From Glycera tridactyla (Eukaryota), in NCBI GenBank assembly GCA_965644265.1, contig OZ286461.1, positions 95,604,001 to 95,668,000 on the forward strand: a stretch of DNA of 64,000 bases, written 5' to 3'. The notes under the pieces are model-generated. The model was not told the DNA's origin, searched no databases, and worked only from the letters and a program-made list of their open reading frames with translations. Of this stretch, positions 61 through 59,251 are shown one piece after another. A program made the translations under genes and the position numbers. Position 1 is the stretch's first letter. Each line of letters starts with the position of its first letter.

Positions 61-183
61 AGTGTATTCAAGTGTTGTTCCTGGATACAGCATCTTCTTG
101 ACTGTGACTGTACCAGTATCAGGATCGACGTTGAAGAATTCCATTGCTATAGTGTCCCCAATGGCTCGATATATGACACGATC
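61..183 (-). CDS. Cadherin exon 55 (short); gene continues left of the window
   Basis: tgtag|GAT..ACT|gtgagt; 123 nt; DRVIYRAIGDTIAMEFFNVDPDTGTVTVKKMLYPGTTLEYT. Confidence 0.9.
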
Positions 184-6100: not shown

Positions 6101-9100
6101 ATATCTTCAAAAGTGGCCCCCTCCTGATGAAAGATGCATCATAAATATCTCCAAAAGTGGCCCCCTCCTGATGAAAGATGCATCATAAATATCTTCAAAA
6201 GTGGCCGCCTCCTGATGAAAGATGCATCATAAATATCTTCAAAAGTGGCCCCCTCCTGATGAAAGATGCATCATAAAAATCTTCAAAAGTTTGCCCCTCC
6301 TGATGAAAGATGCATCATAAATATCCTGTGAATACTCGAGGATATGTCTCCACGTGATTAGCTGATCATTCAGCTCAATCATATTCCTCTGATTGCCATG
6401 AAATGAAATGAAAATAATTTAGAGTGGTACAAGCATGGCACTTACCCCATCTTGATCAGTGGCAGTGACCTGCATCACGACCTCACCAAGGTCAAACTTT
6501 TCATCAATGGTGGCCTCATACACACCAGCTGGGTCAAACACTGGTGCATTTGGATTGCGTATGACTGTAATGGTGGCCGTACCGGTTGCCTGGTTGTCAG
6601 GGTAGGTTGTATCATATGCTATCACTTTCAGCTGCAAAGGTCAAAACAATTAGATATCAAGATCATAATGGGAAAAGTAGTGAGTCTCCAATAAAGCATG
6701 GGATTTTTCCCACAATCTGTGATGTCTCAATGAGNNNNNNNNNNNNNNNNNNNNNNNNNNNNNNNNNNNNNNNNNNNNNNNNNNNNNNNNNNNNNNNNNN
6801 NNNNNNNNNNNNNNNNNNNNNNNNNNNNNNNNNNNNNNNNNNNNNNNNNNNNNNNNNNNNNNNNNNNNNNNNNNNNNNNNNNNNNNNGAAAAGTCGTTGT
6901 ATTCTTCCATGAGATATAGTTCATGTCATCAATCCCTTTTCAACCATATATTTCCACTTACAAGGTATGTGGGTGCACGCAGGCTGTCTTCAACCAGACT
7001 CTTCTTGATGCGTACTTCTGCACTATCCTCATGGACACTGAAAAAGTCCTGCGCTGGATATTCTCCAACGATCATGTACTTGATTTCACCCTGAAACATG
7101 ATATGTTACAGTGAATAAATGAATACATTCCGTCAGAATTATGTCTATATATGTTACCGGAAAAGCCAAACCTGGCTGCTAAGAGATATCTACTCATAAT
7201 TACGAACCTTGACTTGAATGAAACCATGTTTCACAATAAACCACTGAAACATACAAATCACCTGGACCTATCTTCTTAATTGATAGTGACATGAGCAAAA
7301 AAAAGACATTATACTTGATCTATTTCTCAATGAAGCAATATTCTAACGACCCCAACCCTATCCTTATCTCAGCATATTTCATCCATGACTGATTTGAATC
7401 AAACCATACTGCATAAAATTTCAGAGTAAGCCGTGGTTCTTCCAATTGATCCAGGTACTCCCAAATATACTATAGATACATAGAAAATTGGAGTGCATTT
7501 AGTTTGAAGAGCAGTTCTGATGTATACCTTCATGCTCAACAACTGAATGGAGTATTCCATAGTCAATTCATGTTCGAATGAGATTGCTTTAGACATCTCT
7601 ACATGGCTATTCTGATTCAGGATGATGGACCAATTACTAGAATCTTCTGGTACATACCACAAGGTCACCATCTGTTGCCCTCAGTGGCCCTGGTGAGAGT
7701 CCAATGACTGAGTCCACGGCTGTATCCTCCTCAATCTCAGCTGTGTATGGACTGTTGGTGAATGCAGGCGCTTCCAGATCCCGACTGATTGTTACAATGA
7801 CTCGCGTCAAGGCAGTTTTTTCAGGCGCACTCTGGTCACTCACTTGTAAGTCAATCTTCAAGTGAACACAAAAAGGAGTCATGTTTTACATCATATTCTA
7901 ATGGTCCAAATCACAGAAGTGTGGTTTCATGTGAGTTTGCTTGAACTTATATTCGTACCTCAAAACATATTCCCAGGTTTCCCACACTACATTGCAGCAT
8001 CTGCCAAATCCAGAATGAAAGAATTTCAGACATTCATAAAGTATAACATTTCATGATGTGGCAGAGCTTCCACAATATCAAAGTGTGTGAAGTTCAGATA
8101 GATTAGAAATTTTGATGGAATTATTCACCTACACTACACTACAATATATCGCTAAGGCTACCCAACCAAAATGGCAGCCAATGTATTACATGCTATGTTA
8201 CAAGTACAATGATACAAACCTCTGTTGGAACTGCCTTGAGCAGAGAGAAAACAAGTAATTCTACTATCCTAGACACCTCGCTAAGTCTAATACATTCAAT
8301 ATCAAAAAGAGGACTTGGAGTCAGTAACCGTATGAAAAAATAGCAAATATGTTGATACACATCAGTCAGTGTATAATTCAAATCCCCCTTTGATGGCCTC
8401 CCACCCACAAATAAAGCTTCACTCTTATATGTATATTCACTTTCACCCTAGTCTGAGATAAGCTCGGCTAAGACAAACTTTTATGAATTCAAGGTCAAAG
8501 TTATATTTTTTCACTAGGCCAAATTTCATCGCAGCAAAGGGGAGGGAAATGGGTTACTTTACTGACTGGCTGATTGATTCAGTAATACTTAATTTCCCTT
8601 CAATCATCACAAGATTATATGAGACTGAAGGATAAAGCTTATATTATCATTATTATTATCTTCATCATTGCGTGCCAGGAACATCATATGAATCTTTTGG
8701 CTGTCATGATATGGGTGAGAAGATCACAGAGGTCTCCTTCAGTTTCTACCTGGGGACCTAACAATATTGCTATAGAAATCATTGTATAGTACTCTTCATT
8801 GAGAAGTTCATGGAAATTATGTGGTATGATGTGATGCAATTTCAAAATATCAAGACAGCAGTGTGTAAAATTAACTCGTTCCATTCGCTGGCCGGCCGGG
8901 CCAGTGAATTGGTGAGATTCACTGGCCCGGACCTCATTTCACTGGCCCAGGTTTTTCTTGGAGAAATAATTGTTGTTGACACCCATTTATTGGTGATTTT
9001 ATTCTGACTTTTATAGCTGATAATATCGCCAGAAATGGCATATATTTCTGGCGAAACGAAATCCCGTACGTGTTCACGCAGGGCGAGATATGGAACGAGA

Positions 9101-12100
9101 TCTGTCTTGATTTTCAACATCATCGATTTATAAGGCCGAAATACATATTAAATACCTGATATAACGATGAAATATACACGTAGAATGTAAGAATAATGTC
9201 TTTATTTGTCGAAATATCGTTCAAAACTCATCGATGGCCATTTTATTGACGTATTTAGGTCGATTCTTCTGATGATGATTTCTCCATTGAGAAATGGTTT
9301 CATGCAGACGAAATCTCGTGATGGCGAGAATTCGTGAGAGACCTAAACATCACGTATATTTATCGGCCCGCTAGGAGATTTACTGGCCTCGGGCCGCCGG
9401 GCCGGTGTTAATTTTACACGCTGAAACATCGTCGGTCACTACCTAGGACCTTCTTCTGTAAAGGTTCACACATTGTAGCCTTGATTCATACTTTCAGTAT
9501 GAAATCACCAGGCAATACTGTCTACATTCATACATATGATGAGTTATCAGAGATTCCGGAAAAATAGTGTGTATGGATTGAAGTCCTAATTTCACTCATC
9601 CTGAACCCCCAACCATGAATAGTTTCGGCTCATGAGATGTTTCAACCATCACATCCTGACCATATTCCGAAATTGTTGAGAAACCTTCGACGTTCCAGTT
9701 TCATGAAAATCATACATATGGATATCGATGACAAAAAGCTGATGAGAAAACCATAAAACATGGCAAAATGGATCAGGAGCATGAATCCAAAAATGAGAAA
9801 ATAAAAAATGCAACCAAAATACTCAAAAACTTTGTTTGAGAAGAAAGTGATCATAGTTCCACTAATGTGAAGACTGATCAAGATGAATTGATGACCCCAA
9901 TGCCAAATTGATCAGATATGTTTATTAGGTTGGGGAAAATCCAGCAGTCGCTTGGGCCGGTGAAGTGAGATCTTCCCCAGCCCTCTGCAACATTCCTCCT
10001 GCCAACCTGCATATCATCAGTCTTAATCGAGATTATACGCCTGCCTATTAGGCAGGCAGACTAATGAAAATCCTGCCTGAATACTGAATCTGGATGCCAG
10101 TGAAGCAGGTATTGGCATTGAGCCTTGGGTATGAAGGTATGACAAACCAGCCCTAGGCAGAAGCTTTGATGGATTGGTCCTATTCTCTCCATCATACTGA
10201 AATTAATCCTGCCTACTGCAGGTTAAATTGACAGACTCTACTCAGAGATGGCCATGGGGCAATGACTTCACATATCCACTGTACTCTCAAGATAATATGA
10301 AGTAATACTCACTGAGTTTTAATCAAAGATCTCTACCTCAATTTTGGATACGGATGTTCACTCTATTCTCAAGATAATATGAAGTGACACTCACTGAGTT
10401 TTAATCATAGATCTCTACCTCACTATTGGATAGCAGTATGAAGTCAATATACCCCAAATACCCAGTGAACTTCTTTCTTGATGCTTCTAGGTGAAATAGA
10501 TGATCCATTCCCTTCAGATTGTGAATTCTAAAGCAGTGTAAACCTTAATCTAGAGCAGAAAAAGATAACGATAACAATCCTGATGGACATGCAAAATACT
10601 ATAACCTCACTTCATATGACCACAAATGGAGACACTGAAGCAAAACAATTATTCATGCTCTATGATGTGATCCAATCCTCTCAGTGTTAAATTTCACTGA
10701 TGAATTTGTTGGATAATCATGCAGAATAGTATATGAAATGTTAGATGGATTGAAGTATATAATCAAAGACAAAATACAATATGATCAGAGTTTCATACCA
10801 GAAATCTTGTGTAAAACCATGCACGTGCATACCACACATACACTAAAGTGTTGGCATTATTCTGGAATGGAAGACAGCACTGATGAATTCAGGACATCCT
10901 GAATTTTAATTGACAATTGATGGAACAAATGATAATCCTGCAATGTAAGACATTCCTGTAGTGGTTTTCATGGAATATAATTCCACACAGCTGTTGACCT
11001 CAAATGAAGGATGAGAGGGCAGCGGTTTGCAATTTCCAAAGAAAAGAAACTTCAAATTTAAGTGAGAAAGTAAATTCTGGAGATAACATGTAGCTTTCCT
11101 CACAGGGAAATGCTGTCAATATTTATCATCTGGTCATTTTTCCCCATTATTCAGTAGTCCCATCAGTGAAACTTCAGTAAGTTCTAATGAATGTAGAATA
11201 GAGAAGCTAAACAATGCTGATTCCAGCAATACTGACAAATCGCAGATGACACAGTTGAGAATACTTAGCATTGTTAGACAATAAAGTGGCACTTTATGTT
11301 GAAGCTAGATATGATTGACTATATCCTATGTGGAATTAAAGATATATCTACAAATCACAAGCTATCTATCATATTATACTGGCATACTCAGTGATGTTAG
11401 TCTCACTACAAATATAGCTACTACAAACAAGATATTGTGAATTCATTATACATGTATAGGCTGTACATAATTAGAATTATCTGCAATCATCATATATTCT
11501 TGCTGCTCAATTCAACCACAAAAATGTCTTGCCTACAATATAACCTTCTTCAAAAGTCATATAAAACAGTGACATCATTGTAAGCAGGAATCCAATAAAC
11601 TCATACAATTCTGAAGCACCACCGTTTCATAAGAAATGACTTCTCACAAAGTATATCGGTGGATATCATCGGGGATATGGAGCATGCATTCCTGCAAATG
11701 GAGTGCCATCCCCTGACTCACATCCCCAGATGTCACTCATTCTTAAAGCAATTCATAGAAGAGAAGCTGATGTGCCCCAAATGAACTTAAGTCTGAAAAA
11801 GGAACTGATATCCAATGAAAGATGACCTTCCTCTTAGAGGTGAAAAGTTTCGTCTGTTGAACCTATGATACCTCAAAGGATCTCGATATGAAGATCACAT
11901 TATATGGAAAAATTTCTGCCACAAAGAAGACATCAGTTTCAGACTTAAGCCGGTAATCATGTTGAAGATAACCACATTTGGGAAACAAACTATAGGTGTG
12001 TGTGTGTATGTATGACCTTAACTATCATAAGCACTCAGAAAGGTCATAGTGCAGTCATCCAACATCCAAAGTCTCATAGTGACAATCCCACAATGTTCAG

Positions 12101-45100: not shown

Positions 45101-48100
45101 CACAAAAAACACCTGTTTACAAACTGAATGATCAAACAATTTTCATCACCTGAAATTACAATAAATATGAACTACTCGAATTCCAAAAGCCAATATGAGT
45201 TACTGAAATTACAATAAATATGAACTACTCGAATTCCAAAAGCCAATACAAGTTATTGAAATTACAATAAATATGAACTACTCAAATTCCAAAAGGCAAT
45301 ACATGATCAATCCCATGAAGATAAAAGACATTGAAATGAAATGTATGCCATTCATCTTATATCCTATTCAATCTGACAAACAGGAAAATACGAGATTTTG
45401 ATGACCACCAGAGGCCCAGTCAAATGAGTCAGGGACATGGAAGCGAAAGAGGTGAAATCAATTAAGGTGGCATAATTACAGAGCCCATTTCCATGTATGT
45501 GTGTATGAATATAGCCATGTAGCCACCCAGAAACAGCCTACTGTAAAGAATATGTACAATCATATGAACCTCGAAATTCCTCAATGTAAGAACATCTTGC
45601 ATACAATGATGGGAATATGTAATGTAGATCTGAAAGTCATTTGCAAATTAGAAGTGATTTCTGCAAAGTAAACATCATCGTCATCCACACAAGTCTACAA
45701 TCATACCACCACCCTTCAATGTCATATATATTTTGAGCTTCTTTTCCAAATTTGTGCCAATGCATCCGACCGTTTTAAGGCCAATTCAATAAATCCCATC
45801 AACTGAGACCAGGAAAACAATCATTGAAATTTTGAATAATTTGGGAAGAATCTGGATAGATTTGCTGTAATAATTTCCATAATTCATTACAGTTTCCAAG
45901 TAGGCAATAAATACAGTTGTTCAAGAGATAATATTTTTGTTCAAGTACAAAGCATATATCAACATGACCAAGCCAAGCATACTATTTGTATCAATACACC
46001 TAAGGCGACACCTACATGCCATACACCAACTTAGACAGGCAACTAATCTATACCAAGGCAATTACAAATGAGAGATACACTAATTTGCATATCCATCTTA
46101 ATTCTCATCTCAGGAGTCTGCATCCCTTGATTTCTATAAAACCTCGGGCAACACATGCATGTTCGTGAGCTTCAAGGCCATTCAATGGGTCGCTTTCATG
46201 GATATATGAAAAATATTGAAGCACTTTTTCTGGTAGGGTAACTTGATAATCATATATATTAGTTACTGTCCAAAAGAACACACTGTCAAGTAGTCACATG
46301 ACTGATTATGATGGTGCATGTCAATTTCACTAAGATTTTTGTGAGCCCAATTTGATCTTAAGTGTGATAGATTAATCAGAAAATGATTGATTCTGAGTCT
46401 CACAAAAACATAGCTACTGACACTGAACAGAGTAAACATTAAGGAAAAAGGCCAACCCTTTTGCAGCCTCAATCATCTAAGTATCAGCTGTCAGTGTGCG
46501 CCTGGCAGCATAAGTCTGCAACGATGGAGGCTAGCTGGGGCTGATGCCATATTAGAAACAGAAATGAGATTGTTCATGAAGTTCATACATGATGAGAATC
46601 TGTGTCCCTACCTATCCACTAATTTTCATGCAGATATTCACACAAAAACCAACTCATATGAGCAATTTAGTGTACACACTCTTTTGTTTTATTCCATTAC
46701 TTGATCATGCAATGAAGGGCTGGATGGTGTACTCATGACTGATTGTGTGACAAGGCTGCCACACATGGTGGGCGGCTTGGTTGTGAAGTCGAATGATTGC
46801 TTTCAAATACGCCAAACTGCATCAACTGTACTCTGGCTGTTCACAGAACAATATCTGCCAGGTGATCCTTTGTTTTTCCCATCAGATTGTTTTTCACAAT
46901 AATTGACCTGTCCTAAGCATGAACTTGCTCTAAGCAAAAGTGGTCTGGTTTTTCTTCTCATGAGAAGGAATAGATAGCTGCTATCACTCAAACATAGCAT
47001 TGAATGAATAGTGGCTTGGATGTCCAAGTTGCATAATGCTTCTGGTGGCACAATGTTTGCTTGTCCAGATAGAAGTCTATTGCATCATGGTCTCAGCTGA
47101 TGAAGAGTTCCAGATACTTAAGTAAAAGCTTTCTTACACATGCAAAAACAAGCAAACACAAAATTGCCTGCAACCATCACCATTGCATACCCAAAAATAT
47201 ATCTTATCATTCTATCTTTGATGAAATCACATTTTGACACAAATGACTTGCAACTTTAGTGCTATGCATGCAGAGGTAGTTGACTCATATACAAGCCCAG
47301 TAAAAGTTTATCAAAGGTCAATGATATCTATTCCTTGAACCATAATATGATGGCTTTACAGGATATCAATATAGGAATGAAGATCAGTTACATTGTTCAT
47401 GATGAAGTTGACAAATATATAAATAAATAGATGCAATTCCTTTTTGACATACTGTACTCTCATTAATATATACTAATCATATACAAAAGCAACCAAACTG
47501 CCCCACTCTATCTGATTTGCATTCATCACACATTCACACCCTGGAAATATAGAGTTTGCATATGCATGCATTAAAACAGAACAAAATCAATGCTCACCAC
47601 CAATCTAGAAAGCCACATTTCAACAGATAGCTATGGGTAGTTTTAGTCAATTGAGAACTGCTTAACATTTCAAATTATTCTGATACATCAGAATGTAGAA
47701 TAAATCACTTATCGAAATTGGAAGTATACATAAAGTGAGATATTGAGATTTATTGATCACTTGTAAATGGGGAACTCTCATCATTCTTAATGAATTTGCA
47801 AGTTGTATCAGTCCTCATATATAAAGCCTCCATGTACTGGATCGCAATATAAGACATTGTAGCATATCTCACAGCTAGCTTCCCTGAGACAACATGAGAC
47901 ACCAATTTGACCTCAAATTGCATATATTAGTTGGTCATGGCATCTCTCCGCCTGGATTTTATATTCTGTTGTTATGCACCCAGAGCCTAACATCTGATCT
48001 TAATAGATGCCAACTTCTGCAGGGTATTATAGAAAGAAAGTTGTATGGAAATGTACCATCACATAAGCCAGACCCAACAATGATAACCCAAAGATAGAAA

Positions 48101-51100
48101 TCCCATACATGCACCAATACTTCCAGGGAGAAGTTTGACAGTCCAACAACTGTTGAAAATTGTTGGCAATCTGAATTTCCGCTGATGACTGACATACACA
48201 AGGTGGTCTTTGCCTTCAAATGATGTCACCCTATCACCTCGGCCAATCAAAGTACAATCAGTCATTTTGATTGACAATTTTTCAACAATTTCCTACAGAA
48301 ACATCCAAATAGCAGCAAGTTCAGTTGCAGCTAACATTCAAACATTTCATAATGGAAATGGTGTTCCCCTTCTTTTTGACATGCTTGAGATAAAGAGCAC
48401 AGGGTAGGTAATCTGGCAAATGTTTCTTTGTTCACCAAAGAGAACCACCAGCGAAAATGTTCATCAAATCCCCTATGAAATATTCTCTATCTTAAGTGTC
48501 TTAAAGAAAGGATGGGGACCCTGTTTCTCATATGACAGATTGCTGACAATTTTGGAGCAGCTGAACTTCACCTGGATATGATGAATGGAACATCCCATAC
48601 TAGATGCATCCAAGTCATATTGACCAGTCATGACTGGAAATATGTTGAAATATGAAATAATAACCCGCCATCAAACATGATGCAATAGTGCCCAATATGT
48701 AGATAGATATACCACCAGAAATATTGTCAAATGAAATGTAATAATAGACTCTTCAACTGTGGCTATGACCTGTTGCAAAAGAGGGGGAACTTAACATCCA
48801 GTGCGGGATGACTGAAAAAGTTCGCTCTTTTAGTCATCCCACAGAGGCAACAGTTCATGCTTGGGAGATGCATGAATGATAAGCATGAGGTCAGAGCAAC
48901 TGGATGTCATATTGTATATCAATTATCGACAACTTCCCTACTTCACAGGTACTCATGGACATGATCATTCTCCGATTAATCTCTTTTTGAGACTTGAAAA
49001 TTTGTGACTTCATTGTGGAAGTAGAGATCATCTAAAGAAGTGAGCTGTTGTTGTCATTATACATATTTCGATTTCACTTTATATTTGAGATGACATCCAG
49101 TTTCTCCAGTTACCAATGCTGCTTACAGTGAAAACTTTCTTTCATATTCACATCAAATTGTTCAAGTCAAAACTTGATCGTTTATTTGAAGAGACCAGGT
49201 CGGATTCGATAGACCAAGCATGATAACATGAATTGCTTCTTTCCAATAATTTTCACTGAAATATCATACCCATATATGAATACAAAGAAAGTGACGAGAC
49301 AGCTCAGCTGAAAACGTCAAAAGGCTGTAACAATGAAGCAGGTCAAGAGCCAGTGAAAAAAATGCTTAAAAAATTGCCGGGCATTGTCGCAGGGTACGGC
49401 GTGCACGTATGCTGAACCTACCGCATAGTTGTTGTAGGGTACACCATCATTGTCCAGCTGGAATAAAGTGAGATCACATTCATAACACCGCCTGACATTC
49501 ATGAGTCTCGAATCATAGAATTGGATTGTCATTTCATTATCTGTCATGCCTTTTTCAAATATACGTCATTACAGAAATATTTGAATGGAGGATTGAACAT
49601 AACTGGGCATGTTCCGCATAATGTGAGCTCATGAACATCAAAGGTAGACATAAGTCAAACAAAAGACATCAAGCATCCATCTCACTCATAAGTGTGTGAA
49701 GAAAAACACAGAGGGGAAAGTAAAAAAATAATACTGCTTCTACAGAGAAAAATTCTTCAATAAGGTCTATCTAAAACAATCCAAAATCGGCAATATGGGA
49801 TGTAAAACCATGTACTAAATGTAACAAAGAAACAAATTACAGGCCCTGATGGGGATAAATGTGGAAGACATGGTCATGCGGACTGGGGATTAGGAATTGC
49901 AGCATAGTTCGGATATCTTGCCAATTTCAGTACAGCGAAACATGCGACGAGAGTCCGCCCTAAATGTCACCAAAAAGCGGTCTCTCAAAAGAGATGGTCT
50001 CTAGGCAGAGGTATATTTGACTATGTCAAATAGAAAAGCTGCCCTGGAAAAGCAGTCTCTGGTCGGAAGTGGTCTCTTGTTGGGGGGGGGGGGGGGGGGT
50101 TTCTCTCATCGCAGGTTTCACTGTATCTGTCTGGTAGAGAATCTAATGGACCTACCATTAGTACCAGTGTTTCAATACAAAATCAGCAATTTGGGACATT
50201 TAACTTGAGCAGTGATGAGAAATCAGATTCATATTCAAATACGTATCTCTTTGATATGCTTGTGCCATAAAATATGTGAGTGGCTCAAGTGAAGTTTATG
50301 GGACCTGCCCCTTATAGCCAATGTTTCAAAACAGAATGATAATCAATAGGTTTATTGTTCAAAGATGCTAAAAGTAACAGAAAGCATGGATGCATGCTTG
50401 TATGAACAAATTGTGGAAATATGTCTTAAGATGGAGACAAATGTATGGAATGCTACCTCTATATGCATAATTGTTTGTCATAATTTGACAGAGACTCAAA
50501 CATCCATTAGTTTGAAGGATTTATTCCATCAAATGCAGGGTATGAGGATTATTGGATCAGAAATGGTATGTGGAGGGAAAGTAATATCAGCATGAGGAAA
50601 TTAGATCATATCAATGCTGAAATAATAAGCATCCATCAATATCTGTATCATGCTGATCGGACCATGATGTATATTGTATATCTTAAATGTGCAAACAGAC
50701 TGAGAGTTTTGTCATTATGAAAAGACGGAGGGGAAATATGGACTACATCTAGAGGATTGAGAAAAATAACTGTGAGGAACAATATATATGAAAAATAAAT
50801 ATGGGGAATTCTGTCCTATTCTGAGAGGGTACTACTTACCGTGTAATCAAATGTGATATCTGACATCAGATCGTTGGAGATGAACACTTCTCCAGTATCC
50901 CGACGCACTTCAAAGAAATATGGTGCTGGAACTGTACCAATCACTTCATATTTCAAAGCTCCCTGAAAGGAAAAGATGGGTTTCAGGCATATGTGGCACT
51001 AAACGGAATATACATCTTACTACAGCATATAGATCCTCAATTTAATCTTGGAATGAACCCATGATATTCCCATATGAAATGATTGCATATCAAAGATTCA

Positions 51101-54100
51101 GATCAGTGACAATCATCACAATCTGAATGGATACCGATTAGAATATACAGCTAATGGTCATATATTTTGACAATTAATAACTGAAAATAGAATTGCGATC
51201 ATTTTTGACGTACCTAACATAAAGAAAAAGTTGTAGGGGGTTGGCAAACATTTTCTTGGTTGTAATTGAACTGAATACCCTGCCATACTTTGCATATGGC
51301 AATTGAGTGGTTTCACTCAACAAGTTATAGCTTTTGACCACAACTTTCCACACAATTTTCAATCAATCTTGTAACCTTATTGACGATAACATCATAATAC
51401 AAGGCGTTGTTCTCATTCCAATATATATCGATTTGGAAGCATTTGTGGTGACCTGATGATTTGTAAGATTAGTTTAGTAAAACCTCTTTTGTGAGATCCC
51501 TCTTTTGGGAGACTGCCCTCTTTTGAAAGACTGCTTCTCAGTGGTTCCTTCCTATTTCACACTGTGAAATATACCTGCAATGAGAGATCACCTGTCCAGA
51601 GACACTGCTTGTGGATGGTATTTGGGGCAGTGCTACGAAAGAGGTTTTACTGCATAGTACATACATTCAAATCATATAGTCCCCATCGTCACCACAGCTA
51701 CCTCATCTAAAGAAGGATGCTCACCATTCTATCATCATCTCGTCCTCTCAAGGTGAAGATCATTCTCCCAACGGGATCTGTTTCCTTAATGGTCACTCGA
51801 TATGGTATGCTCTCAAATATCGGCGGTTGTAAATCACGCTTGACCCGTATATAGGCCAATGTTGTTGTATTTTTTCTTGGTGAGCCATTGTCTGAGGCCA
51901 TGATATTAAACTGAAAACAAAAATGGATGAAAACAGATAAAATTCACCGAACAAGTGTATTAAATTCATGATTCTTGACAGTACAAGTAACAGATGAGTG
52001 GCCCATCCATGAGAACAGTCATTACATATTATCTCAATATCTTCGTATGTATCAGCAATTATTGCAGAAGGCATTACAGATGTATAATGGCATTTTAATG
52101 ATATCCAAGTGTTCTGACTATTAGAAGACAAAAGAATGATTCCAGAGTAACCAAATCAGTGTGATTTGAGATTTCTTGAATCAAGGCCAATGCAATTCTT
52201 TCTCTCTATCTTCATTATACTATGTGATCAGTGGTGAATAGTCACTAGAATTTAGCAGTTTTGAAGTTTGAAAACATCTCAATTTACACATTATGGCATT
52301 GTTTACATTGTTGTTCTGATGATGATGTTGGCGCTCTAGCCACACTCCTGCAAATATCATGTGCAGATAGCTAGGCTGGAATATAAATCTGTATCACCCT
52401 GGCAAGGTGATACAGATTTTGTCATCAGAGAATGATGATATGGCCACTTTTTCTGCTGTTATCACATCCTTAGCTATCATCTCATCTTCAATCAGGTATG
52501 ACTTATAAATCAGCATGGTTGTTTCAAATGTGACTACAATATATTCTGTATTGGGAAGGAACAAGGTCCTGTGTCATGGGATTATGATGGACACTGTGAC
52601 GTTCTATGCAACTAACTATGCTACCATGAAGCTGCCAGTGATGACTGGGTAACAGAAACCTACTCTGTAATCCACCCGATCCTCCTCTGTGAGCATACTG
52701 GCTAGATACAGCACACCAGTGTAAGGATGAAGATAGAAGAATGATGTCTCGGGCAACTTCTCTACAATTGCATACTCAATAACATCCTACAACACAAGCA
52801 CCATCAATTAATCAAAGGTCCTAAAACGATGAAATCTGATGGATGAAAAATTCATAAATAAGTAAATTCTAAAGAATATTCAGATGAAACAAAATGGTTA
52901 GATATATTCAATTCCAGTCATTCTGTGCATGGTCATCACTTGCTAATCCATCCCGATCCTGAAAGATTATGAACACTTCAATGCAGCTATTAGCTATTTT
53001 GTAGTTGATTTGCGGTAAATAATTAAGGCGCCACTGCTAACCTTGCACTGTTGTTTCAGATATCAGACATATGCTCACACCATCAACCAGCACTAATCTT
53101 GTAGCTGTATCTATATGGTTCATGGATGCAGGCAGCTCTAACAACACCCCTGTCATGATCAGCCTGCTCAAACCTAGCTGCAGCAGCACCCTTCTTACTT
53201 TTGAATGAAGATGCTACCACAACACATGTACACCCAAATAGTCACTAATTTTCAAACACCAGCTATCAGTGACCGAATATGATTGTGACAATCTTGAATC
53301 TATGATGAATACATGTGAGATCTCCCTGGAATTGTTGAATGAACCATCTTATTTACTGAAATGAAAATTGAAAAGAAAATCATCCTCATTGAAGCAGAGT
53401 GAGTGATCAGAAGTAATTGCACCTATATGAATATGTATCATCTATGATGTGACACTGCATCACAAAAGTCTGTTATTTGAATCAGGTGTGACTTGGGGAT
53501 GTGTGAAAGCAAGAAAGTAATGACATCCATCTCCCCAAAACCTGAATGAAAAAATATCGATCGAGATCTCGTTAAAAAGTAATTACAATCTGGTTCAAAG
53601 TTAGTGGGTGAATAAAAATGCTTCAAGGTTTTCAGTATCTAACAAATTGGAAATCTATAGTATAACAAATAGCATTATTACACAAAAGTGAAGAATTGAA
53701 GTGTAGATCTGGGAATTTGGAGATAGAGGGAAACATAGGAAAGCAGAAATGACTTATTTAACTTCTTGTAGTATCGAATTGAGGTAAGAGATTGTGCTTG
53801 ATAATCTCAGGTGTTCCTAGTGAAAGCTAATTGACTACATCAAATCTAAAGCAGATCATGTGAAGGGAATTGTTATTTGAGGATTATCATGAGAACGATT
53901 CACTCACATTCAATGGCCCATCTCCAATCAGCTAAAAGCACAAAAACCTAAAGACTAAGTACTATGCTCAATTGAGAGCTTCTACACTGAATGAAGGACA
54001 CATTTCGGAAGATCTTCTCCAGGTACTGTAGTTTCCTGAATGAAAACTCAAAATGACATCAATACAAGCATTCTCATTAACCTCACCATAAGTATAGGGA

Positions 54101-56157
54101 AACACAGCATATCTTAGTAGATATGTAATATATATACACCGATTATATAGTATTTATCAATTACTTCCTCAATTTACAAGTTGAACTTAGAGTAAATCAT
54201 CTTGTCTTCCTCATCGCTATAATAATTCATACAATCTGTCATATGAATTTTCTTCTATCAGCGGATGAAATGCACTGCAAATACTGGTCAATTCTGTGGT
54301 TTGACTGGGTATTCCATTCTCTGCATTTGCCACTACCTTCATCAAATCCATGGTACCATATCATCTTGATGACTTCACTGTTGATGCTCTCCTAGGCATG
54401 GTGTAGCTAAACTGATGGAACATAACACTGAAAACATTTCTGAACCAATTATCTGCCTATCAGTACTTATATCGGATCTGGGTGAACTGCACCTACCTGG
54501 TCCTGGTCTGTGGCTGTAACTGCAAGGAGACTGGTGCCAACTGCTGATGTTTCCGGCAGGTTGTCAACTCGGTACTCACTCTGTGAGAAGCGCGGCTGGT
54601 ACTCATTACGACGTACTGTCACATTTACAACAGTATTTGCATACTGAGTAGTGACCTCAAACTCTCGCTCTGCTTCCACATAAATCTGTGAATGAACACC
54701 ATAAGTGAGAACATCACAAATTGATTTCTTCTATATTCTGTAATCGGTGCAGAAATTGCATATTCATCAACAAGCTCAGCTTGATATGTGCCACAGCAAC
54801 ATTATGCATTATCATTAAATCCATGCTTAAAGATGATGGTTCTGACTAGCGACATAAAATAAGGAGTTCAGGATTCTGGATCACAAATGTGAATGAGATT
54901 ATGGTAATTCACAGCATAGTACCCTCAAGCGGTCCATCCTGCTTCACAAACCATCATCAAATATCCTGGCCTGCAGGATCGGCAGATAAGTGAAGAACCA
55001 CTGTTACCAGAGACCACTGCTTGTTCTCATCAGGGGCATATGCACTATGTCCAGAATAATGTTCATGAAGGTAATCGAATCAAATAGAGGCAGTTTTTTC
55101 TGATATCATCCATCAAAATAGTTCCCCAATAGCAGCCATGGAATTACAAATTTCCATCAATAGAATGGCAGTAATGACCCTGAATGTCTGAGAACAGTAC
55201 CGACACACTAATCACAAGAAAAGCAATACAGAAATGCCTCATACTCACCAAATAGTATGCACTTGCACTGGGGTCATTTTTGACTGGGTTCCTGATACGG
55301 ATGCTTCCTGATTCGGCTTCAATCGAGAAGTAATCCTGTGCAGTAACTGTGCCTGTTATGCTGTACCTTGTCCCATCCTGCAATGATTCAAGGAAAACAA
55401 ATTACTGTTGAAGTTCATGAAACAGTGTGTTTAAGATGAGAAGTTTTCAGAGGAACCATCAGACCTTCTTGTCAGTTCATCGCAAATACATTGTTACATT
55501 GTCACATGACCTGGTAGTTAGGAACAGATTGCATGCCTTGGTGAGTATCTCTGAGTATATATCAGCTGGATATTGTAGAGGCCCCAATCCATGTTGAGTA
55601 TGTAATCCTCAAAGCAATTGTTGGAACCAATTGGCCTCTTTGTATAGAACTGTGACCTGATAGAATTACTGCAAGGTATATACTTTGAAACTTGTTAATA
55701 GATAGCATCAGGCAGATACATGCCTTGAATTGTGATGAAAAAAAAAATGCTACACAACAGTATGAAAAGAGAATGAAAAGAGTAGCTTGATCAGCTACTC
55801 TCCATCAATGTTCACTGGGTGTCAGGAGGAATCCCTCCTGAGAGTATCTTATCTGGGTATCAAGTCGGTTGAATGGGTATTGGTTAGGCTTGGTTTGATT
55901 CAAAATCGAAAGGGAAAGATCTTGGAGCTGACATACAGTCATACAGTAAATTCTGACACATTCTAATAATGAATACATACACTTGGGGATGCTGTCACGC
56001 GTACCACCTCAGTATTTATCTCCTTATTCTCTGAGATTGTTGTAGCGTAGGAACTAGTTGAGAATCGTAATTCACCCCGATCACGGACCACCTCTACCTC
56101 CACAGTAGCCTCTCCTGTCTTTTGCGGGAAACCTTGATCAACTGCCTGAACTCGGAC
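61..56157 (-). CDS. Giant non-classical cadherin (Fat/Cdh23-like size class), partial: 55 exons, ~2,970 aa, ~28 EC repeats
   Basis: 55 segments bounded by AG/GT on the minus strand, each a multiple of 3 nt with no stops. They carry recurring cadherin motifs (PxF..Y...xE, AxDxD, Y.I...F.I...G.I, AxDxGxP). No signal peptide, TM or cytoplasmic part seen, so orthology cannot be assigned. Confidence 0.93.
878..1066 (-). CDS. Cadherin exon 54 (long)
   Basis: tccag|ATA..GGG|gtgagt; 189 nt; IRVLAYDDIYPEQTATATVEVQMQRNENRPVWANEGPLRVTIKETVPLGHIVTDEPRATDADG. Confidence 0.9.
1628..1750 (-). CDS. Cadherin exon 53 (short)
   Basis: ttcag|GGT..ATG|gtaagt; 123 nt; GTIKYQLIGDFPSPYFFHVDDMSGLITVQNDLKTDHAFSYM. 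Confidence 0.9.
2044..2229 (-). CDS. Cadherin exon 52 (long, gamma)
   Basis: tccag|TTT..CAG|gtaact; 186 nt; FTIAARDNRTPERSAEAVVTIKVNRNLYLPEFQGQPYFTILSENEVVGGSVFTARARDRDIQ. Confidence 0.9.
2928..3065 (-). CDS. Cadherin exon 51 (short)
   Basis: tacag|GAT..AGG|gtcagt; 138 nt; DTLTYEWNGDANEALAISYFFITPDTGVVHLKQSLMNDDLGTTQYR. Confidence 0.9.
3333..3472. mobile_element. Tc1/pogo-type MITE, left-truncated (same subfamily as 49933-50123)
   Basis: Shares 'aatgtcaccaaaaag(t/c)ggtctct...gactatgtcaaa...gcaggtttcactg|ta' with 49933-50123. Confidence 0.7.
3689..3871 (-). CDS. Cadherin exon 50 (long)
   Basis: ttcag|ATG..CAG|gtgagt; 183 nt; MRVTVLDSGNPTAIATSTVNIPVLRNVNAPVYNNNNYEATINENLNVGVDILAVTATDADQ. Confidence 0.9.
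4195..4317 (-). CDS. Cadherin exon 49 (short)
   Basis: tgtag|GGC..ATC|gtaagt; 123 nt; GQLQYGVIGDPPTPEYFEINRDTGVITIKKDLMEDWSPYYI. Confidence 0.9.
4706..4894 (-). CDS. Cadherin exon 48 (long, gamma)
   Basis: ttcag|TTG..AAG|gtaaaa; 189 nt; LNVEAVDSGIPSQSIMRELVINILRDEYEPEFVETPYNAPTVPEDRPVGSTVFTVSGRDMDQK. Confidence 0.9.
5807..5935 (-). CDS. Cadherin exon 47 (short)
   Basis: ttcag|GAC..AGG|gtaata; 129 nt; DTVEYYLRNEVEDEALQYFFLNVDTGVITTKRFLTESDTKEFR. Confidence 0.9.
6061..6324. repeat. Minisatellite, 6 x 44 bp
   Basis: Unit cttcaaaagtggccccctcctgatgaaagatgcatcataaatat, near-perfect copies. Confidence 0.95.
6446..6631 (-). CDS. Cadherin exon 46 (long)
   Basis: tgcag|CTG..GGG|gtaagt; 186 nt; LKVIAYDTTYPDNQATGTATITVIRNPNAPVFDPAGVYEATIDEKFDLGEVVMQVTATDQDG. 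Confidence 0.9.
6735..6887. other. Assembly gap
   Basis: N run. Confidence 1.
6962..7090 (-). CDS. Cadherin exon 45 (short)
   Basis: ttcag|GGT..CTT|gtaagt; 129 nt; GEIKYMIVGEYPAQDFFSVHEDSAEVRIKKSLVEDSLRAPTYL. Confidence 0.9.
7658..7855 (-). CDS. Cadherin exon 44 (long, gamma)
   Basis: tgaag|ATT..GTG|gtatgt; 198 nt; IDLQVSDQSAPEKTALTRVIVTISRDLEAPAFTNSPYTAEIEEDTAVDSVIGLSPGPLRATDGDLV. Confidence 0.88.
8859..9423. mobile_element. Non-autonomous DNA transposon (hAT-like CAG termini), CpG-rich
   Basis: 17-bp TIR cagtgtgtaaaattaac / gttaattttacacgctg (1 mismatch); subterminal ggcccg/actggcc motif clusters; flanks agacag / aaacat. Confidence 0.8.
10277..10432. repeat. Tandem duplication, 2 x ~82 bp
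   Basis: 'tctcaagataatatgaagt..cactgagttttaatca.agatctctacctca' occurs twice, 82 bp apart. Confidence 0.85.
11280..12520 (+). mobile_element. Decayed DIRS/Ngaro-like retroelement relic (RNase H end + tyrosine recombinase)
   Basis: Frame-broken motifs in the expected order: CLAYNITFFKSHI (~11.55k), NGVPSPDSHPQMSLILKAIHR (~11.7k), KEDISF (~11.93k), IQHPKSHSD...SCCHLLSQFILLQP (~12.06-12.17k), GIMDRSVKNL (~12.44k). Judged by eye only. Confidence 0.45.
14486..14611 (-). CDS. Cadherin exon 43 (short; not in ORF track)
   Basis: ttcag|GAT..GAT|gtatgt; 126 nt; DDVLSYSIIGSESSMEYYYVNPETGEITLKKLLTDGTSISDD. Confidence 0.88.
15155..15337 (-). CDS. Cadherin exon 42 (long)
   Basis: cacag|CTA..GAG|gtgaga; 183 nt; LPVTVYDTGRPQKTATATYTASISRNENTPQFNQPEYRVTINDLWDLGQHIVTVTATDQDE. 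Confidence 0.9.
15769..15897 (-). CDS. Cadherin exon 41 (short)
   Basis: tgtag|GGT..AAG|gttggt; 129 nt; GQLKYDLIPSVPATEIFYIHPDTGQIRLKSTELLQADAAFEYK. Confidence 0.9.
16654..16836 (-). CDS. Cadherin exon 40 (long, gamma)
   Basis: tgtag|TTT..CGG|gtaagt; 183 nt; FEVMVSDQGIPERTAKTWVMVIFIEDSMPTFDNLPEEQVVSENIVHDAVVYDVNARDNDQR. Confidence 0.9.
16878..17036. mobile_element. Tc1/pogo-type MITE
   Basis: TA|cagtcaaacctg...caggttcgactg|TA; internal ggtggtct(t/c)ta repeats. Confidence 0.85.
18280..20450 (+). mobile_element. Decayed DIRS/Ngaro-like retroelement relic, interrupted by a MITE
   Basis: TDALGYGG (~18.31k, RNase H-like); TDQCL...EHEFDA*FLHGNFLRFNQIV (~19.49-19.63k, YR box I-like); IIVDGVLL (~19.94k); HSNSRKIG...IRNSEFLLNIR (~20.33-20.44k, resembles the HSFRIG...GRWxSxAFxxYIR terminus). 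Judged by eye only. Confidence 0.5.
20090..20250. mobile_element. Tc1/pogo-type MITE (family of 16878-17036)
   Basis: cagtcagaccggtctataaagac...gagcagattagactg|ta; clearly similar to 16878-17036. Confidence 0.8.
20488..20686. mobile_element. CAGT-ended MITE with 6-bp target-site duplication
   Basis: CAGAAC|cagtgtcgg...ccgacactg|CAGAAC; internal gagaca(aa/tt)tgtc / tgtctcacatttt repeats. Confidence 0.8.
20712..20831 (-). CDS. Cadherin exon 39 (short)
   Basis: tgtag|GAT..AGG|gtgagt; 120 nt; DVMLYSIVESPPITDLFFLNPSTGVLSLKRVWPGEDTEYR. Confidence 0.88.
21411..21596 (-). CDS. Cadherin exon 38 (long, lacks AxDxG)
   Basis: ttcag|TTA..GGG|gtaagt; 186 nt; LMIKATYTGVSAHDAICYVDITVTRNEKSPQFTQGEYRYEILEYFPLGESILQVSANDEDEG. 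Confidence 0.9.
22141..22361. mobile_element. Tandemly duplicated partial Tc1/pogo-type MITE abutting the exon 37 donor
   Basis: Two copies of 'ttatatgaaggccacctg.atacagaggcca...caggtctga.t...ataatgatatgagtacttac'. Confidence 0.75.
22362..22490 (-). CDS. Cadherin exon 37 (short)
   Basis: tacag|ACT..AAG|gtaagt; 129 nt; TDIIYEVVGTSNAPDYFSVERQSGEVKIKADIRNDPSDVTFYK. Confidence 0.9.
22848..23024 (-). CDS. Cadherin exon 36 (long, second delta module)
   Basis: ggcag|GTA..GGG|gtaagt; 177 nt; VRVRATDDGAIPKTSTAVVEVRVVRDEGDLRFSQETYTAEVSENQNVGSTITTVRASPG. Confidence 0.9.
23551..23611 (-). repeat. Short interspersed repeat fragment (family 2)
   Basis: Reverse complement aligns with 37451-37512 (tgggg.ccct..ttc.gtta....gttagcga...ttag.tgcaa.tgaacagcctgcag); weaker pieces near 4981-5030 and 48320-48570. 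Confidence 0.65.
23978..24109 (-). CDS. Cadherin exon 35 (short)
   Basis: tgtag|GCT..GGT|gtaagt; 132 nt; APNNVVSYSIIGDGDAPAYYYVHPTDGVITLLQSVYESEHREFG. Confidence 0.9.
24205..24308 (+). mobile_element. Helentron-associated (HINE/DINE-1-like) element 3' end with (TACG)n microsatellite
   Basis: ~12 TACG units, then aaactataatacaccgcttttttcaaaagcggggtataaaaa containing the hairpin ccgctttt-ttc-aaaagcgg; related motif at ~57781-57810. Confidence 0.6.
24855..25040 (-). CDS. Cadherin exon 34 (long)
   Basis: tacag|TTG..GCT|gtaagt; 186 nt; LRILAQDGGTPPKTSTATLLIDVDRNLAQPRFSQDVYQAEIPEILPAGSTVSQVTATDEDTA. Confidence 0.9.
25770..25904 (-). CDS. Cadherin exon 33 (short)
   Basis: tccag|GAA..ACT|gtaagt; 135 nt; EPFNIVSYEMIGDDSGPSYFKLEDNGDIKVRAGVNLPADTETSYT. 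Confidence 0.9.
26545..26739 (-). CDS. Cadherin exon 32 (long, beta7)
   Basis: gacag|TTT..CGG|gtaagt; 195 nt; FEAMAYDLGGIHALNSSNRASLNIIVKRDQNAPQFQGTPYYKRIAQDQPEEQIFFTVQATDVDDR. Confidence 0.9.
27082..27219 (-). CDS. Cadherin exon 31 (short)
   Basis: tgcag|TCA..CAT|gtaagt; 138 nt; SPYNEVRYLLVGEAGILQYFMIDAVTGEISLKKSVLDDPNEPDNYH. Confidence 0.9.
27644..27829 (-). CDS. Cadherin exon 30 (long)
   Basis: tccag|ATT..AAG|gtaagt; 186 nt; IRIEAADGGTPPLKTMSLLQVHVNRNLNPPVFANTNYEKEILETQALGLPFTQVSASDSDTK. Confidence 0.9.
28874..29005 (-). CDS. Cadherin exon 29 (short)
   Basis: ttcag|ACT..CAG|gtagga; 132 nt; TPFNVIHYAIIGDDSAPTYFRVDPEKGEVKTQREINNDYETDYQ. Confidence 0.9.
29130..29291. other. Assembly gap
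   Basis: N run. Confidence 1.
29733..29924 (-). CDS. Cadherin exon 28 (long, beta6)
   Basis: tacag|ATA..GCG|gtgagt; 192 nt; ITVLARDMGVPESRLGQSSRVVVNVIRNTQTPQFIGTPYRKNVTEDISVDTLVYTVRAEDRDAA. Confidence 0.9.
30570..30887 (-). CDS. Cadherin exon 27 (fused long+short, 106 codons)
   Basis: tacag|CTA..ACG|gtaatg; 318 nt; LRVMVQDGGVPPCAVTSVATVNVNRNLFSPRFVQSEWTEEIMETHPLTEPILTVTAEDQDDK-VPHNTIRYEIEENSQYGDRFLLDPVSGQLFLRRTLVGETSIQYT. Confidence 0.9.
31342..31476 (-). CDS. Cadherin exon 26 (short)
   Basis: tgcag|AAT..CAG|gtgatt; 135 nt; NTPFRELSYSLLGDDQGPTFFSIEAETGIIRVKTDLRSDDEIQYQ. Confidence 0.9.
31994..32185 (-). CDS. Cadherin exon 25 (long, beta5)
   Basis: tccag|ATT..CAG|gtgagt; 192 nt; IVVSAHDLGFPELVSPDSATVTVRVQRNNNCPQLQGEPYVAAIDQTKAMNSEVIAIQAVDFDPQ. 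Confidence 0.9.
32365..32697. mobile_element. CAGT-ended MITE with 6-bp target-site duplication
   Basis: TGCAAT|cagtcttc...gaagactg|TGCAAT; subterminal cactctccc/gggagag repeats. Confidence 0.8.
32902..33039 (-). CDS. Cadherin exon 24 (short)
   Basis: ttcag|GCT..ACA|gtaagt; 138 nt; APYNEIRYQITASEKALEYFLINEMTGEIYIKKPLSEDDPEVSSYT. Confidence 0.9.
33407..33592 (-). CDS. Cadherin exon 23 (long)
   Basis: ttcag|ATT..AAG|gttagt; 186 nt; IRVMAEDGGDPMKTATATVAVNVNRNQFAPIFNPQRLDRNILEDHPLGVAIADVNATDEDTK. Confidence 0.9.
33978..34109 (-). CDS. Cadherin exon 22 (short)
   Basis: tgcag|GCC..ACG|gtaggt; 132 nt; APFNKVTYRIIGDNKASSLFRINSDSGDINLNTSLTADSDITYT. Confidence 0.9.
34859..35047 (-). CDS. Cadherin exon 21 (long, beta4)
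   Basis: tgaag|GTT..GAG|gtaaga; 189 nt; VRIQAYDGGDPARASTEAEVDISIGRNWFAPEFQRTPYQTTIRESLSVGSSVYSVTTNDRDAE. Confidence 0.9.
35648..35785 (-). CDS. Cadherin exon 20 (short, two Cys)
   Basis: ttcag|TCA..AGT|gtaagt; 138 nt; SPYNLLTYGITGTEAAMECFAINEISGDVVLRQSLLLEPCLEEAYS. Confidence 0.9.
36503..36688 (-). CDS. Cadherin exon 19 (long)
   Basis: ttcag|ATC..AAG|gtgggt; 186 nt; IRANVADRGIPARSNTTTVRVKVNRNFNDPVWQQSQYEANINEGITLGTSIVRVSATDADRK. Confidence 0.9.
37100..37231 (-). CDS. Cadherin exon 18 (short)
   Basis: ttcag|GGT..ACG|gtgaga; 132 nt; GPFDTLAYSIIGDDLAPTYFGISSVSGDISIKRNLEETSIEEFT. Confidence 0.9.
37451..37512 (+). repeat. Short interspersed repeat fragment (family 2)
   Basis: Matches the reverse complement of 23551-23611. 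Confidence 0.65.
37879..38073 (-). CDS. Cadherin exon 17 (long, beta3)
   Basis: tatag|GTC..GAG|gtatgc; 195 nt; VDVQATDGGTPPKNSPSQARVTIQVTRNMFTPSWEGNLPYETTVNENQDINTKIFEVQATDADPE. Confidence 0.9.
38563..38700 (-). CDS. Cadherin exon 16 (short)
   Basis: ttcag|GCA..AGT|gtaagt; 138 nt; APYNVFTFAITGTELGQEYFMIDKNTGQISVKKGLSLDPERRTTYS. Confidence 0.9.
39044..39229 (-). CDS. Cadherin exon 15 (long)
   Basis: tgtag|GTT..AAG|gtgtgt; 186 nt; VRIMAYDGGTPARSDTSVVSVKVQRNLNAPQFSPAEYEVNILETQQLGVPFTQVRATDEDQK. Confidence 0.9.
40105..40236 (-). CDS. Cadherin exon 14 (short)
   Basis: gacag|GAA..AGG|gtaatg; 132 nt; EPYRFIRYVVIGDDTAPVYFSVGELSGEVTLKASVNGDTETDYR. Confidence 0.9.
41013..41207 (-). CDS. Cadherin exon 13 (long, beta2)
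   Basis: ttcag|CCA..GCT|gttagt; 195 nt; PFSILATDLGKNPRTSREPARVTINVERNEHTPLFQQEPYFKEINRDAPTDTSIATVSATDQDEA. A second AG 8 nt further in is out of frame, so the acceptor is slightly less certain. Confidence 0.85.
41572..41715 (-). CDS. Cadherin exon 12 (short)
   Basis: ttcag|GAG..GGG|gtgagt; 144 nt; EPYNVVRYEIQENSDPKILEYFKVDPQTGILYLLKSLRLDSSGIKQYG. Confidence 0.9.
41892..42077 (-). CDS. Cadherin exon 11 (long)
   Basis: tgcag|CTT..AAG|gtatga; 186 nt; LRVLAKDGGVPAQTATATAKVEILRNFHDPVFNPRDYSQTILETYDIGVSILQVSADDEDTK. Confidence 0.9.
42543..42674 (-). CDS. Cadherin exon 10 (short)
   Basis: tgcag|GGT..ACG|gtaagt; 132 nt; GPFSQVNYSLIGDDAATTFFEIVYNQGQVRIKQDLSTENEDFYT. Confidence 0.9.
43266..43457 (-). 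CDS. Cadherin exon 9 (long, beta1)
   Basis: ttcag|GTG..CCT|gtaagt; 192 nt; VHVYATDTGYPPRNSTNTARVQVLVTRNRLSPVFTLSDYEASVEETRPVGSMVLDMIARDDDPP. Confidence 0.9.
43836..43964 (-). CDS. Cadherin exon 8 (short)
   Basis: ttcag|GAT..CGG|gtaaga; 129 nt; DSVIYTMSNTSSEAAEDFFYVNPTTGVLTLARSLAETSMADFR. Confidence 0.9.
44241..44263. repeat. Poly-C (23 nt; G-run on the sense strand)
   Basis: Directly visible homopolymer. Confidence 0.95.
44377..44559 (-). CDS. Cadherin exon 7 (long)
   Basis: tccag|CTC..CAG|gtatat; 183 nt; LTAIVYDDVNPDSFATANLTITVKRNENPPRFENSDRTITIPEIQAVGSTISTVTATDRDQ. Confidence 0.9.
44891..45043. other. Assembly gap
   Basis: N run. Confidence 1.
45151..45306. repeat. Minisatellite, ~3 x 53 bp
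   Basis: Unit tgaaattacaataaatatgaactactcgaattccaaaagccaata(t/c)(g/a)agtta(c/t). Confidence 0.92.
49933..50123. mobile_element. Tc1/pogo-type MITE with an internal G18 run
   Basis: TA|cagcgaaacatgcga...tcgcaggtttcactg|TA. Confidence 0.8.
50840..50962 (-). CDS. Cadherin exon 6 (short; not in ORF track)
   Basis: ttcag|GGA..ACG|gtaagt; 123 nt; GALKYEVIGTVPAPYFFEVRRDTGEVFISNDLMSDITFDYT. Confidence 0.9.
51475..51652. mobile_element. Related MITE (older copy)
   Basis: TIR tagtaaaacctcttt / aaagaggttttactg; internal gagactgc/gagatcacc repeats. Confidence 0.7.
51725..51910 (-). CDS. Cadherin exon 5 (long, gamma module)
   Basis: ttcag|TTT..ATG|gtgagc; 186 nt; FNIMASDNGSPRKNTTTLAYIRVKRDLQPPIFESIPYRVTIKETDPVGRMIFTLRGRDDDRM. 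Confidence 0.9.
52664..52786 (-). CDS. Cadherin exon 4 (short; not in ORF track)
   Basis: tgtag|GAT..AGA|gtaggt; 123 nt; DVIEYAIVEKLPETSFFYLHPYTGVLYLASMLTEEDRVDYR. Confidence 0.88.
54497..54685 (-). CDS. Cadherin exon 3 (long, lacks AxDxG)
   Basis: cacag|ATT..CAG|gtaggt; 189 nt; IYVEAEREFEVTTQYANTVVNVTVRRNEYQPRFSQSEYRVDNLPETSAVGTSLLAVTATDQDQ. Confidence 0.9.
55249..55377 (-). CDS. Cadherin exon 2 (short)
   Basis: tgcag|GAT..TTG|gtgagt; 129 nt; DGTRYSITGTVTAQDYFSIEAESGSIRIRNPVKNDPSASAYYL. Confidence 0.9.
55981..56157 (-). CDS. Cadherin exon 1 (long, delta module)
   Basis: tgcag|GTC..AGT|gtatgt; 177 nt; VRVQAVDQGFPQKTGEATVEVEVVRDRGELRFSTSSYATTISENKEINTEVVRVTASPS. Confidence 0.9.
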
Positions 56158-59100: not shown

Positions 59101-59251
59101 CAAGGCTGGAAGCAAAAAAGATATGAATACATATGAATACAAGTGTTTTCTTGTCACTTATCTCATAAGCTTGGATCTACCTCAAGAGCAGATGTTTTAA
59201 TATTGCAAGAAGTGGTGCATGTAACCTTCTAATGATGGGTGAGTAAACATA

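Follow-up and report, generated by a model that had tools for sequence, protein, structure and literature searches.

In-frame half-repeat exons and RN linkers in a giant cadherin gene of Glycera tridactyla

Exon model and transcription of the locus

The window, a 64,000-nucleotide stretch of Glycera tridactyla contig OZ286461.1, carries part of one cadherin gene. By profile search and splice-site placement across this 64-kb window, we modelled 55 exons on the minus strand, running from 56157 down to 61: 27 long exons, 27 short exons and a single fused long+short exon, number 27. Long exons measure 177-198 nt and short exons 120-144 nt. All 55 lengths are divisible by three, summing to 8910 nt or 2970 amino acids, a coding capacity of 28 cadherin-repeat equivalents, and every exon boundary of the model is an in-frame AG (acceptor) or GT (donor) in phase 0. 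The original prediction that all exons are multiples of three with phase-0 ends is borne out by this model, which has the same limits (56157-61), and the predicted long/short alternation is broken once, at the fused exon 27.

The model was derived from two small profiles, one for the long exon type (A) and one for the short type (B), which were built from clear exon examples and run against every open stretch on both strands. These gave 56 significant matches, on the minus strand only and in strict long/short order. Splice signals in phase 0, a GT donor and an acceptor with its pyrimidine tract, bound each match at the expected ends, and their consensus is strong (GTAAGT/polypyrimidine). Cadherin motifs are almost confined to the minus strand, where open stretches match the Pfam Cadherin profile, and a plus-strand gene was ruled out, with all profile matches and the cadherin motifs on the minus strand. 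Searches used single exons as queries, and exon pairs were joined solely for comparing units within the window.

All exons below are given on the minus strand and are based on a profile match together with phase-0 splice sites. Exon 1 (long, 56157-55981) is of a 177-nt "hinge" kind lacking AxDxD and begins in mid-repeat, so that the gene runs on upstream, past the end of the window. Exons 2-6 (50840..55377) alternate short and long in phase 0: exons 2 (short, 55377-55249), 3 (long, 54685-54497), 4 (short, 52786-52664), 5 (long, 51910-51725) and 6 (short, 50962-50840). Intron 6/7 (44560..50839, 6280 nt), in which no cadherin coding sequence was detected, leads to exons 7-8 (43836..44559), a long exon 7 (44559-44377) and a short exon 8 (43964-43836). 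Exons 9-35 (23978..43457) then make up 14 repeat equivalents, or seven two-repeat (4-exon) modules, in which the short exons open with xP(F/Y)N. The long exons of this block are 9 (43457-43266), 11 (42077-41892), 13 (41207-41013), 15 (39229-39044), 17 (38073-37879), 19 (36688-36503), 21 (35047-34859), 23 (33592-33407), 25 (32185-31994), 28 (29924-29733), 30 (27829-27644), 32 (26739-26545) and 34 (25040-24855); the short exons are 10 (42674-42543), 12 (41715-41572), 14 (40236-40105), 16 (38700-38563), 18 (37231-37100), 20 (35785-35648), 22 (34109-33978), 24 (33039-32902), 26 (31476-31342), 29 (29005-28874), 31 (27219-27082), 33 (25904-25770) and 35 (24109-23978). Within the same block lies exon 27 (30887-30570), whose 318 nt join a long and a short exon, one intron having been lost.

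A second 177-nt hinge-type exon without AxDxD, exon 36 (long, 23024-22848), is followed by exons 37-39 (20712..22490), namely 37 (short, 22490-22362), 38 (long, 21596-21411) and 39 (short, 20831-20712). An intron of 3875 nt lies upstream of exon 40, the first of exons 40-43 (14486..16836): 40 (long, 16836-16654), 41 (short, 15897-15769), 42 (long, 15337-15155) and 43 (short, 14611-14486). Intron 43/44 (7856..14485, 6630 nt) likewise yielded no cadherin coding sequence. The remaining exons, 44-55 (61..7855), comprise the long exons 44 (7855-7658), 46 (6631-6446), 48 (4894-4706), 50 (3871-3689), 52 (2229-2044) and 54 (1066-878) and the short exons 45 (7090-6962), 47 (5935-5807), 49 (4317-4195), 51 (3065-2928), 53 (1750-1628) and 55 (183-61). 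A phase-0 donor at position 61 closes exon 55, which means that the gene also runs on past the start of the window.

We mapped the introns onto the cadherin fold using Pfam profile coordinates, alignment to solved cadherins and an alignment of the 28 units. Within each long exon, strands F and G of one repeat are followed by the linker and by strands A and B of the repeat after it, and the intron comes 0-3 residues past AxDxD. The middle strands belong to the short exon, which in 27 of 28 units stops one residue past the conserved Tyr/Phe that opens strand F; exon 43 is the sole short exon that does not. The repeat boundary (xRNxxxPxF) is always internal to a long exon, and the alignment thus agrees with the proposal that introns fall after AxDxD and after the Tyr preceding strand F, never at the boundary between extracellular repeats. 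The uniform phase is far beyond chance if the introns were independent, but they are not independent events, because the exons are copies of one ancestral pair.

Three assembly gaps fall inside introns, 6/7 (44891-45043), 28/29 (29130-29291) and 45/46 (6735-6887; the intron is 330 nt as assembled). The long/short order is unbroken across all three, and since every exon is self-contained in phase 0 the gaps leave the reading frame untouched. The gaps in introns 6/7 and 45/46 may each hide an exon pair; for the gap in intron 28/29, the two orthologous exons of a related species follow each other with no exon in between. A comparison of 12 family proteins with the window added no cadherin coding sequence to the 55 exons, besides one 24.6-bit match inside an intron that transcripts remove, and hence no hidden or degenerate exons in the long introns. 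The same proteins found no cadherin coding sequence upstream of exon 1 (56158-64000), a region that contains a fourth assembly gap (62295-62470); the exon that precedes exon 1 must be in this gap or outside the window.

RNA from four runs of one study was available as assembled contigs, which we compared with the stretch 37001-43000. The four runs contain ~0.15 of the sampled words from this stretch, somewhat below its exon share, and their contigs consist of exons only, with eight introns spliced out. The junctions match the model boundaries of exons 10 through 18 (37100..42674) to the base, confirming eight of the 54 introns; seen from the plus strand the removed introns have CT..AC ends, hence GT..AG on the gene strand, and exons 11-18 sum to 1308 nt, as do the contig coordinates. 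Where RNA covers it, the gene is transcribed and spliced as modelled. If all downstream exons are included, a 22,735-nt contig of run X2 places ~14.3 kb of transcript 3' of the window start, and a 3,505-nt contig of run X1, again with all exons counted in, extends 614 nt or more beyond exon 1 on the 5' side. The mRNA would therefore be at least ~24 kb in size, and the gene far larger than the window.

Two details of these contigs concern individual positions. By length accounting, the X2 contig stops no more than 3 nt from where exon 4 begins (~52786, the exon 3/4 boundary), a point that the X1 contig reads through; this end could reflect a branching assembly graph, for example at an alternative junction or a polymorphism, or lower coverage. 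In addition, two intron spots (37401-37600 and 42801-43000) reach a summed contig depth of 100 to 1100 with many loose ends, and look like interspersed repeats transcribed elsewhere in the genome.

RN linkers and relatives of the protein

The repeats place the protein in the cadherin superfamily: PF00028 matches several exon reading frames, and a search of PDB structures with exon 27 finds CELSR1, protocadherins and CDH23, with E-values as low as 2.7e-27. The linkers between repeats depart from the canonical DxNDNxPxF. In 27 of 28 they read xR(N/D)xxxPxF, with Arg at the position of the first Asp, and this RN linker is one residue shorter than the canonical form. Other conserved positions are retained in most units, including the strand-A Glu (24 of 28), DxD (26 of 28) and xDxG (26 of 28). 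The linker sequence suggests that calcium binding at these joints might be reduced, or replaced by the Arg.

We searched 1.84 billion representative proteins with exon 27, the only whole repeat-equivalent available as a single exon, and matched 3050 cadherins. The top-scoring relatives have many RN linkers and no DxNDNxP; they include two proteins of Haliotis rubra and three of Patella vulgata, and others from bivalves, other gastropods, the brachiopod Lingula anatina and the nemertean Tubulanus polymorphus. They go by automatic names such as "protocadherin Fat 4-like". The Lingula and Tubulanus proteins, however, extend through the membrane span into the tail, and in a Pfam scan only cadherin-type families scored above the cut-off in them, with no EGF-like or laminin-G domains. 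Because these relatives carry cadherin-type domains only, they do not qualify as FAT members. The RN-linker proteins, that of the window among them, form a distinct lophotrochozoan cadherin family, which the automatic label conceals.

Six family members have a common C-terminal block, consisting of a canonical last repeat, ~145 residues and a membrane span. For the Lingula block, an AlphaFold model (mean pLDDT 68.7) gave as its best Foldseek match PCDH15 EC9/10/11-MAD12 (E 2e-14, TM ~0.5), followed by CDH23 EC25-MAD28, compared with just E 0.006 to PCDH15 by sequence alone. The model thus predicts a membrane-adjacent domain of the PCDH15/CDH23 type (MAD12/MAD28 fold) in this one relative. By analogy with its relatives, the Glycera gene, whose ends lie outside the window, would encode a single-pass cadherin with similar ends. 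A giant PCDH15-like family with RN joints would be a more unusual aspect of the locus than the length ladder that had been proposed for it.

The exon design is also found in these relatives. We mapped three annotated proteins to their own genomic loci by exact protein-to-DNA matching. The Haliotis rubra gene (L004) has 71 exons, with 68 of 70 junctions in phase 0, long/short alternation and one fused exon; the Lingula gene (L005) has 78 exons with 69 of 77 junctions in phase 0, and the Tubulanus gene 58 exons with 49 of 57. Non-zero phases in the latter two occur in the last 11-15 exons only; in Lingula these code for the last repeat, the membrane-adjacent part, the membrane span and the tail. 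The design is therefore not peculiar to this locus but common to family members in three phyla and, being present in abalone, brachiopod and nemertean, it predates the split of molluscs, brachiopods and nemerteans. Although the layout is already contained in public gene models, within the literature that could be searched we found no paper specifically on RN-linker cadherins or on cadherin half-domain exons of uniform phase 0; a description may exist. We rejected Haliotis rubra XP_046564129 as a one-to-one orthologue: its exon matches are 35-50% identical with near-equal second matches, and for this reason we treat it as a homologue with partly collinear architecture.

The gene models of two relatives contain near-identical exon copies, in Lingula (L005) at 10491-11745 and 12190-13371, where two short exons also stand side by side, and in Haliotis rubra (L004) at 16789-16974 and 30201-30386. 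These may be recent module duplications or artefacts of assembly or haplotypes.

Module number, splicing and the origin of the array

To compare repeats within the window, we joined one long and one short exon into a unit and aligned the 28 units. Pairwise protein identity ranges from 20 to 49%, with a clear two-repeat periodicity: units at even lags are 34.3% identical versus 29.5% at odd lags, a difference reached by none of 5000 permutations. Units 1 and 19, which belong to the common hinge type without AxDxD, are 45% identical although 18 units apart. We found no DNA-level repeats linking modules in the window, and no k-mer is common to the introns beyond chance levels, which speaks against docking/selector elements of the Dscam kind. 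The array is old, and its sequence carries no sign of regulated exon choice.

The search for DNA repeats between modules turned up only a minisatellite and short interspersed repeats. The minisatellite (6060-6325, in intron 46/47) has six copies of a 44-nt unit with 95% matches. The interspersed fragments (22114-22296, 59317-59398, 16930-17007, 20161-20238, 3324-3396 and 49942-50014) are 77-83% identical between copies and lie in introns and upstream of exon 1.

An orthologous locus in a related species (GCA_013332975.1, L001) was reached via two short predicted proteins ~70% identical to exon 27; the same proteins also led to a near-identical metagenome scaffold. Exons 16-38 match this locus one-to-one and in order at 48-72% identity, as against 35-47% for the next-best paralogous exon, a comparison that covers 12 of the 28 units in one species pair. 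The fusion in exon 27 is common to both loci, and the number of units between it and the second hinge exon is equal. Four further introns are absent from the related species, in which exons 17+18, 21+22 and 23+24+25 are each continuous. Introns have thus been dispensable while module number stayed unchanged over ~40% residue divergence, within exons 16-38, and one-to-one correspondence at ~60% protein identity indicates long-term stability of the module count. The original prediction had taken a fixed module number across species as evidence against a length ladder, and for exons 16-38 of this species pair the number is indeed fixed. Just downstream of the exon-38 orthologue (L001 8862-13521, minus strand), two long open frames with faint zinc-finger matches run on the strand opposite the cadherin; they probably sit inside a long intron.

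We consider it probable that the locus is a constitutively spliced, ancient array built by duplicating intron-bounded exon pairs and quartets. Here we infer both the constitutive splicing of the 46 introns outside RNA cover and the history of duplication. The ancestral repeat would have carried both phase-0 introns, inside the fold and not at the repeat boundary, and the array may have grown by tandem duplication of exon pairs and of 4-exon (two-repeat) blocks. These duplications would have preceded the divergence of molluscs, brachiopods and nemerteans, after which the copies may have drifted to 20-49% identity while module order stayed fixed and single introns were occasionally lost. The in-frame symmetry could have let the array be built in this way, which would not imply that it is put to use at present. 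On this reading the window covers 28 repeat equivalents, a middle part of the stalk in a single, very large cadherin.

The original prediction had proposed that the locus could produce a ladder of ectodomain lengths, either by splicing or by unequal crossover. Its premise stands, in that skipping a long+short pair or a 4-exon block keeps the frame, every boundary being in phase 0, and the design therefore permits in-frame loss and gain of modules. Actual use of this freedom found no support. The splicing version would have regulated skipping of exon pairs or 4-exon modules generate isoforms of different stalk length. Besides the phase-0 symmetry of every exon, it can draw on the two-repeat periodicity, by which 4-exon skips would join like with like, on the X2 contig that stops near the exon 3/4 boundary, and on the annotation precedent of Nematostella RefSeq isoforms that differ by exactly one 303-aa module. 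Against it, we saw only adjacent junctions and no non-adjacent ones at the eight covered introns in the contigs of the four runs, which is a weak test of low-level skipping because contigs lose rare or tissue-specific forms. Furthermore, the splice sites are strong and uniform, no intronic element is held in common, and the related species fused four exon pairs with no sign of constraint. A weak additional argument is that seven annotated relatives each stand alone in a 90% identity cluster, whereas the Nematostella isoforms cluster together. Taken together, we regard regulated skipping as unlikely.

A stronger form of this idea seems slightly less probable again, namely that the symmetry was kept for more than half a billion years for tissue-specific 4-exon skipping that tunes the stalk of a ~100-repeat PCDH15-like cadherin. 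If it were true, the protein would be a natural molecular ruler with exchangeable segments, and a demonstration of module skipping would reveal a new way to set the reach of an adhesion or mechanosensory filament.

The crossover version of the ladder, in which present-day unequal crossover makes module number differ among individuals or close species, is contradicted by the array itself and we consider it very improbable. Phase-0 symmetry would tolerate the gain and loss of modules, scattered interspersed intron repeats could mediate rare rearrangements, and near-identical exon copies do occur in the Haliotis and Lingula models. However, with modules at most 49% identical and no DNA-level similarity between them, the window contains no near-identical DNA copies and no substrate for homologous unequal crossover, and exons 16-38 retain their one-to-one partners in a species at ~60% protein identity. 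Finally, we give almost no credence to the view that the exon model is spurious, with splice sites read into a repeat array and real phases or boundaries that differ. Although direct RNA evidence covers eight of the 54 introns, all eight match to the base, the same positions and phases recur in independently annotated genes of three other phyla, and open reading frames stop a short way outside every predicted exon.

An ancient, constitutively spliced array accounts best for the locus. As things stand its design is permissive only, and it is best regarded as an ordinary, very large, constitutively spliced gene. It also provides an example, RNA-supported at eight introns, of a giant repeat protein built from in-frame exon pairs and quartets.

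Comparison with other modular adhesion genes

Among the closest known systems are PCDH15 and CDH23 (with Cad99C as the invertebrate counterpart). As judged from the relatives, the Glycera protein would have, like these, a long ectodomain made entirely of cadherin repeats and one membrane span, and the last repeat and membrane-adjacent region of the Lingula relative are predicted to fold like PCDH15 EC11-MAD12. The whole of PCDH15 has 11 repeats and the whole of CDH23 has 27, whereas the window alone has 28 and the transcript is at least ~24 kb. The Glycera gene differs further in having RN for DxNDN in 27 of 28 linkers and the same two intron positions in every repeat. Small in-frame exons that cross repeat boundaries occur in mouse Cdh23 too, among them a 129-bp exon that covers parts of repeats 2 and 3 (PMC5347380). 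FAT cadherins are similarly giant, with dozens of repeats and a generic repeat similarity; in contrast, full-length relatives of the RN family lack EGF domains, laminin-G domains and DxNDN linkers. We therefore take the name "protocadherin Fat 4-like" as an annotation habit and not as proof of FAT membership.

Two cases show what the loss of in-frame sub-domain exons can do. In mouse Cdh23, the splice-site variant c.753A (ahl) causes skipping of the 129-bp exon, which gives a full-length protein with a hybrid repeat and is linked to age-related hearing loss in mice (PMC5347380); hybrid repeats are thus not automatically harmless. Dual exon skipping in USH2A, which removes an in-frame exon pair, brought back usherin expression in zebrafish and corrected the mislocalization of photopigment (PMC10258241). 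The logic is the same as that of removing a long+short pair from a long repeat protein, although USH2A has fibronectin-type-3 repeats and its exon pair was removed by design, not by natural splicing. Hybrid repeats can thus be tolerated or harmful, case by case.

Clustered protocadherins and Dscam1 are, like the Glycera gene, cell-surface adhesion genes in which the exon arrangement creates or could create diversity. There, one variable exon is chosen, by promoter choice or by docking/selector RNA pairing; the window, in contrast, has no alternative exon clusters or shared intronic elements.

A different kind of modular exon array is found in a giant cadherin of Nematostella vectensis (L007; GCA_932526225.1, ~7093-51450), with isoforms named "cadherin-23 X1" or "protocadherin Fat 4" in RefSeq. 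It contains about a dozen near-identical tandem modules of 5 exons and 909 nt (303 aa), with mixed phases and canonical DxNDN-type linkers, whereas the modules of the window are old and diverged. Unlike the window array, the Nematostella array is young, recombination-prone and possibly module-skipping. The steps of exactly 303 aa, one module, between its RefSeq isoforms (4407, 4104 and 3801 aa) reflect either real skipping or collapse of modules or an effect of mapping reads onto repeats.
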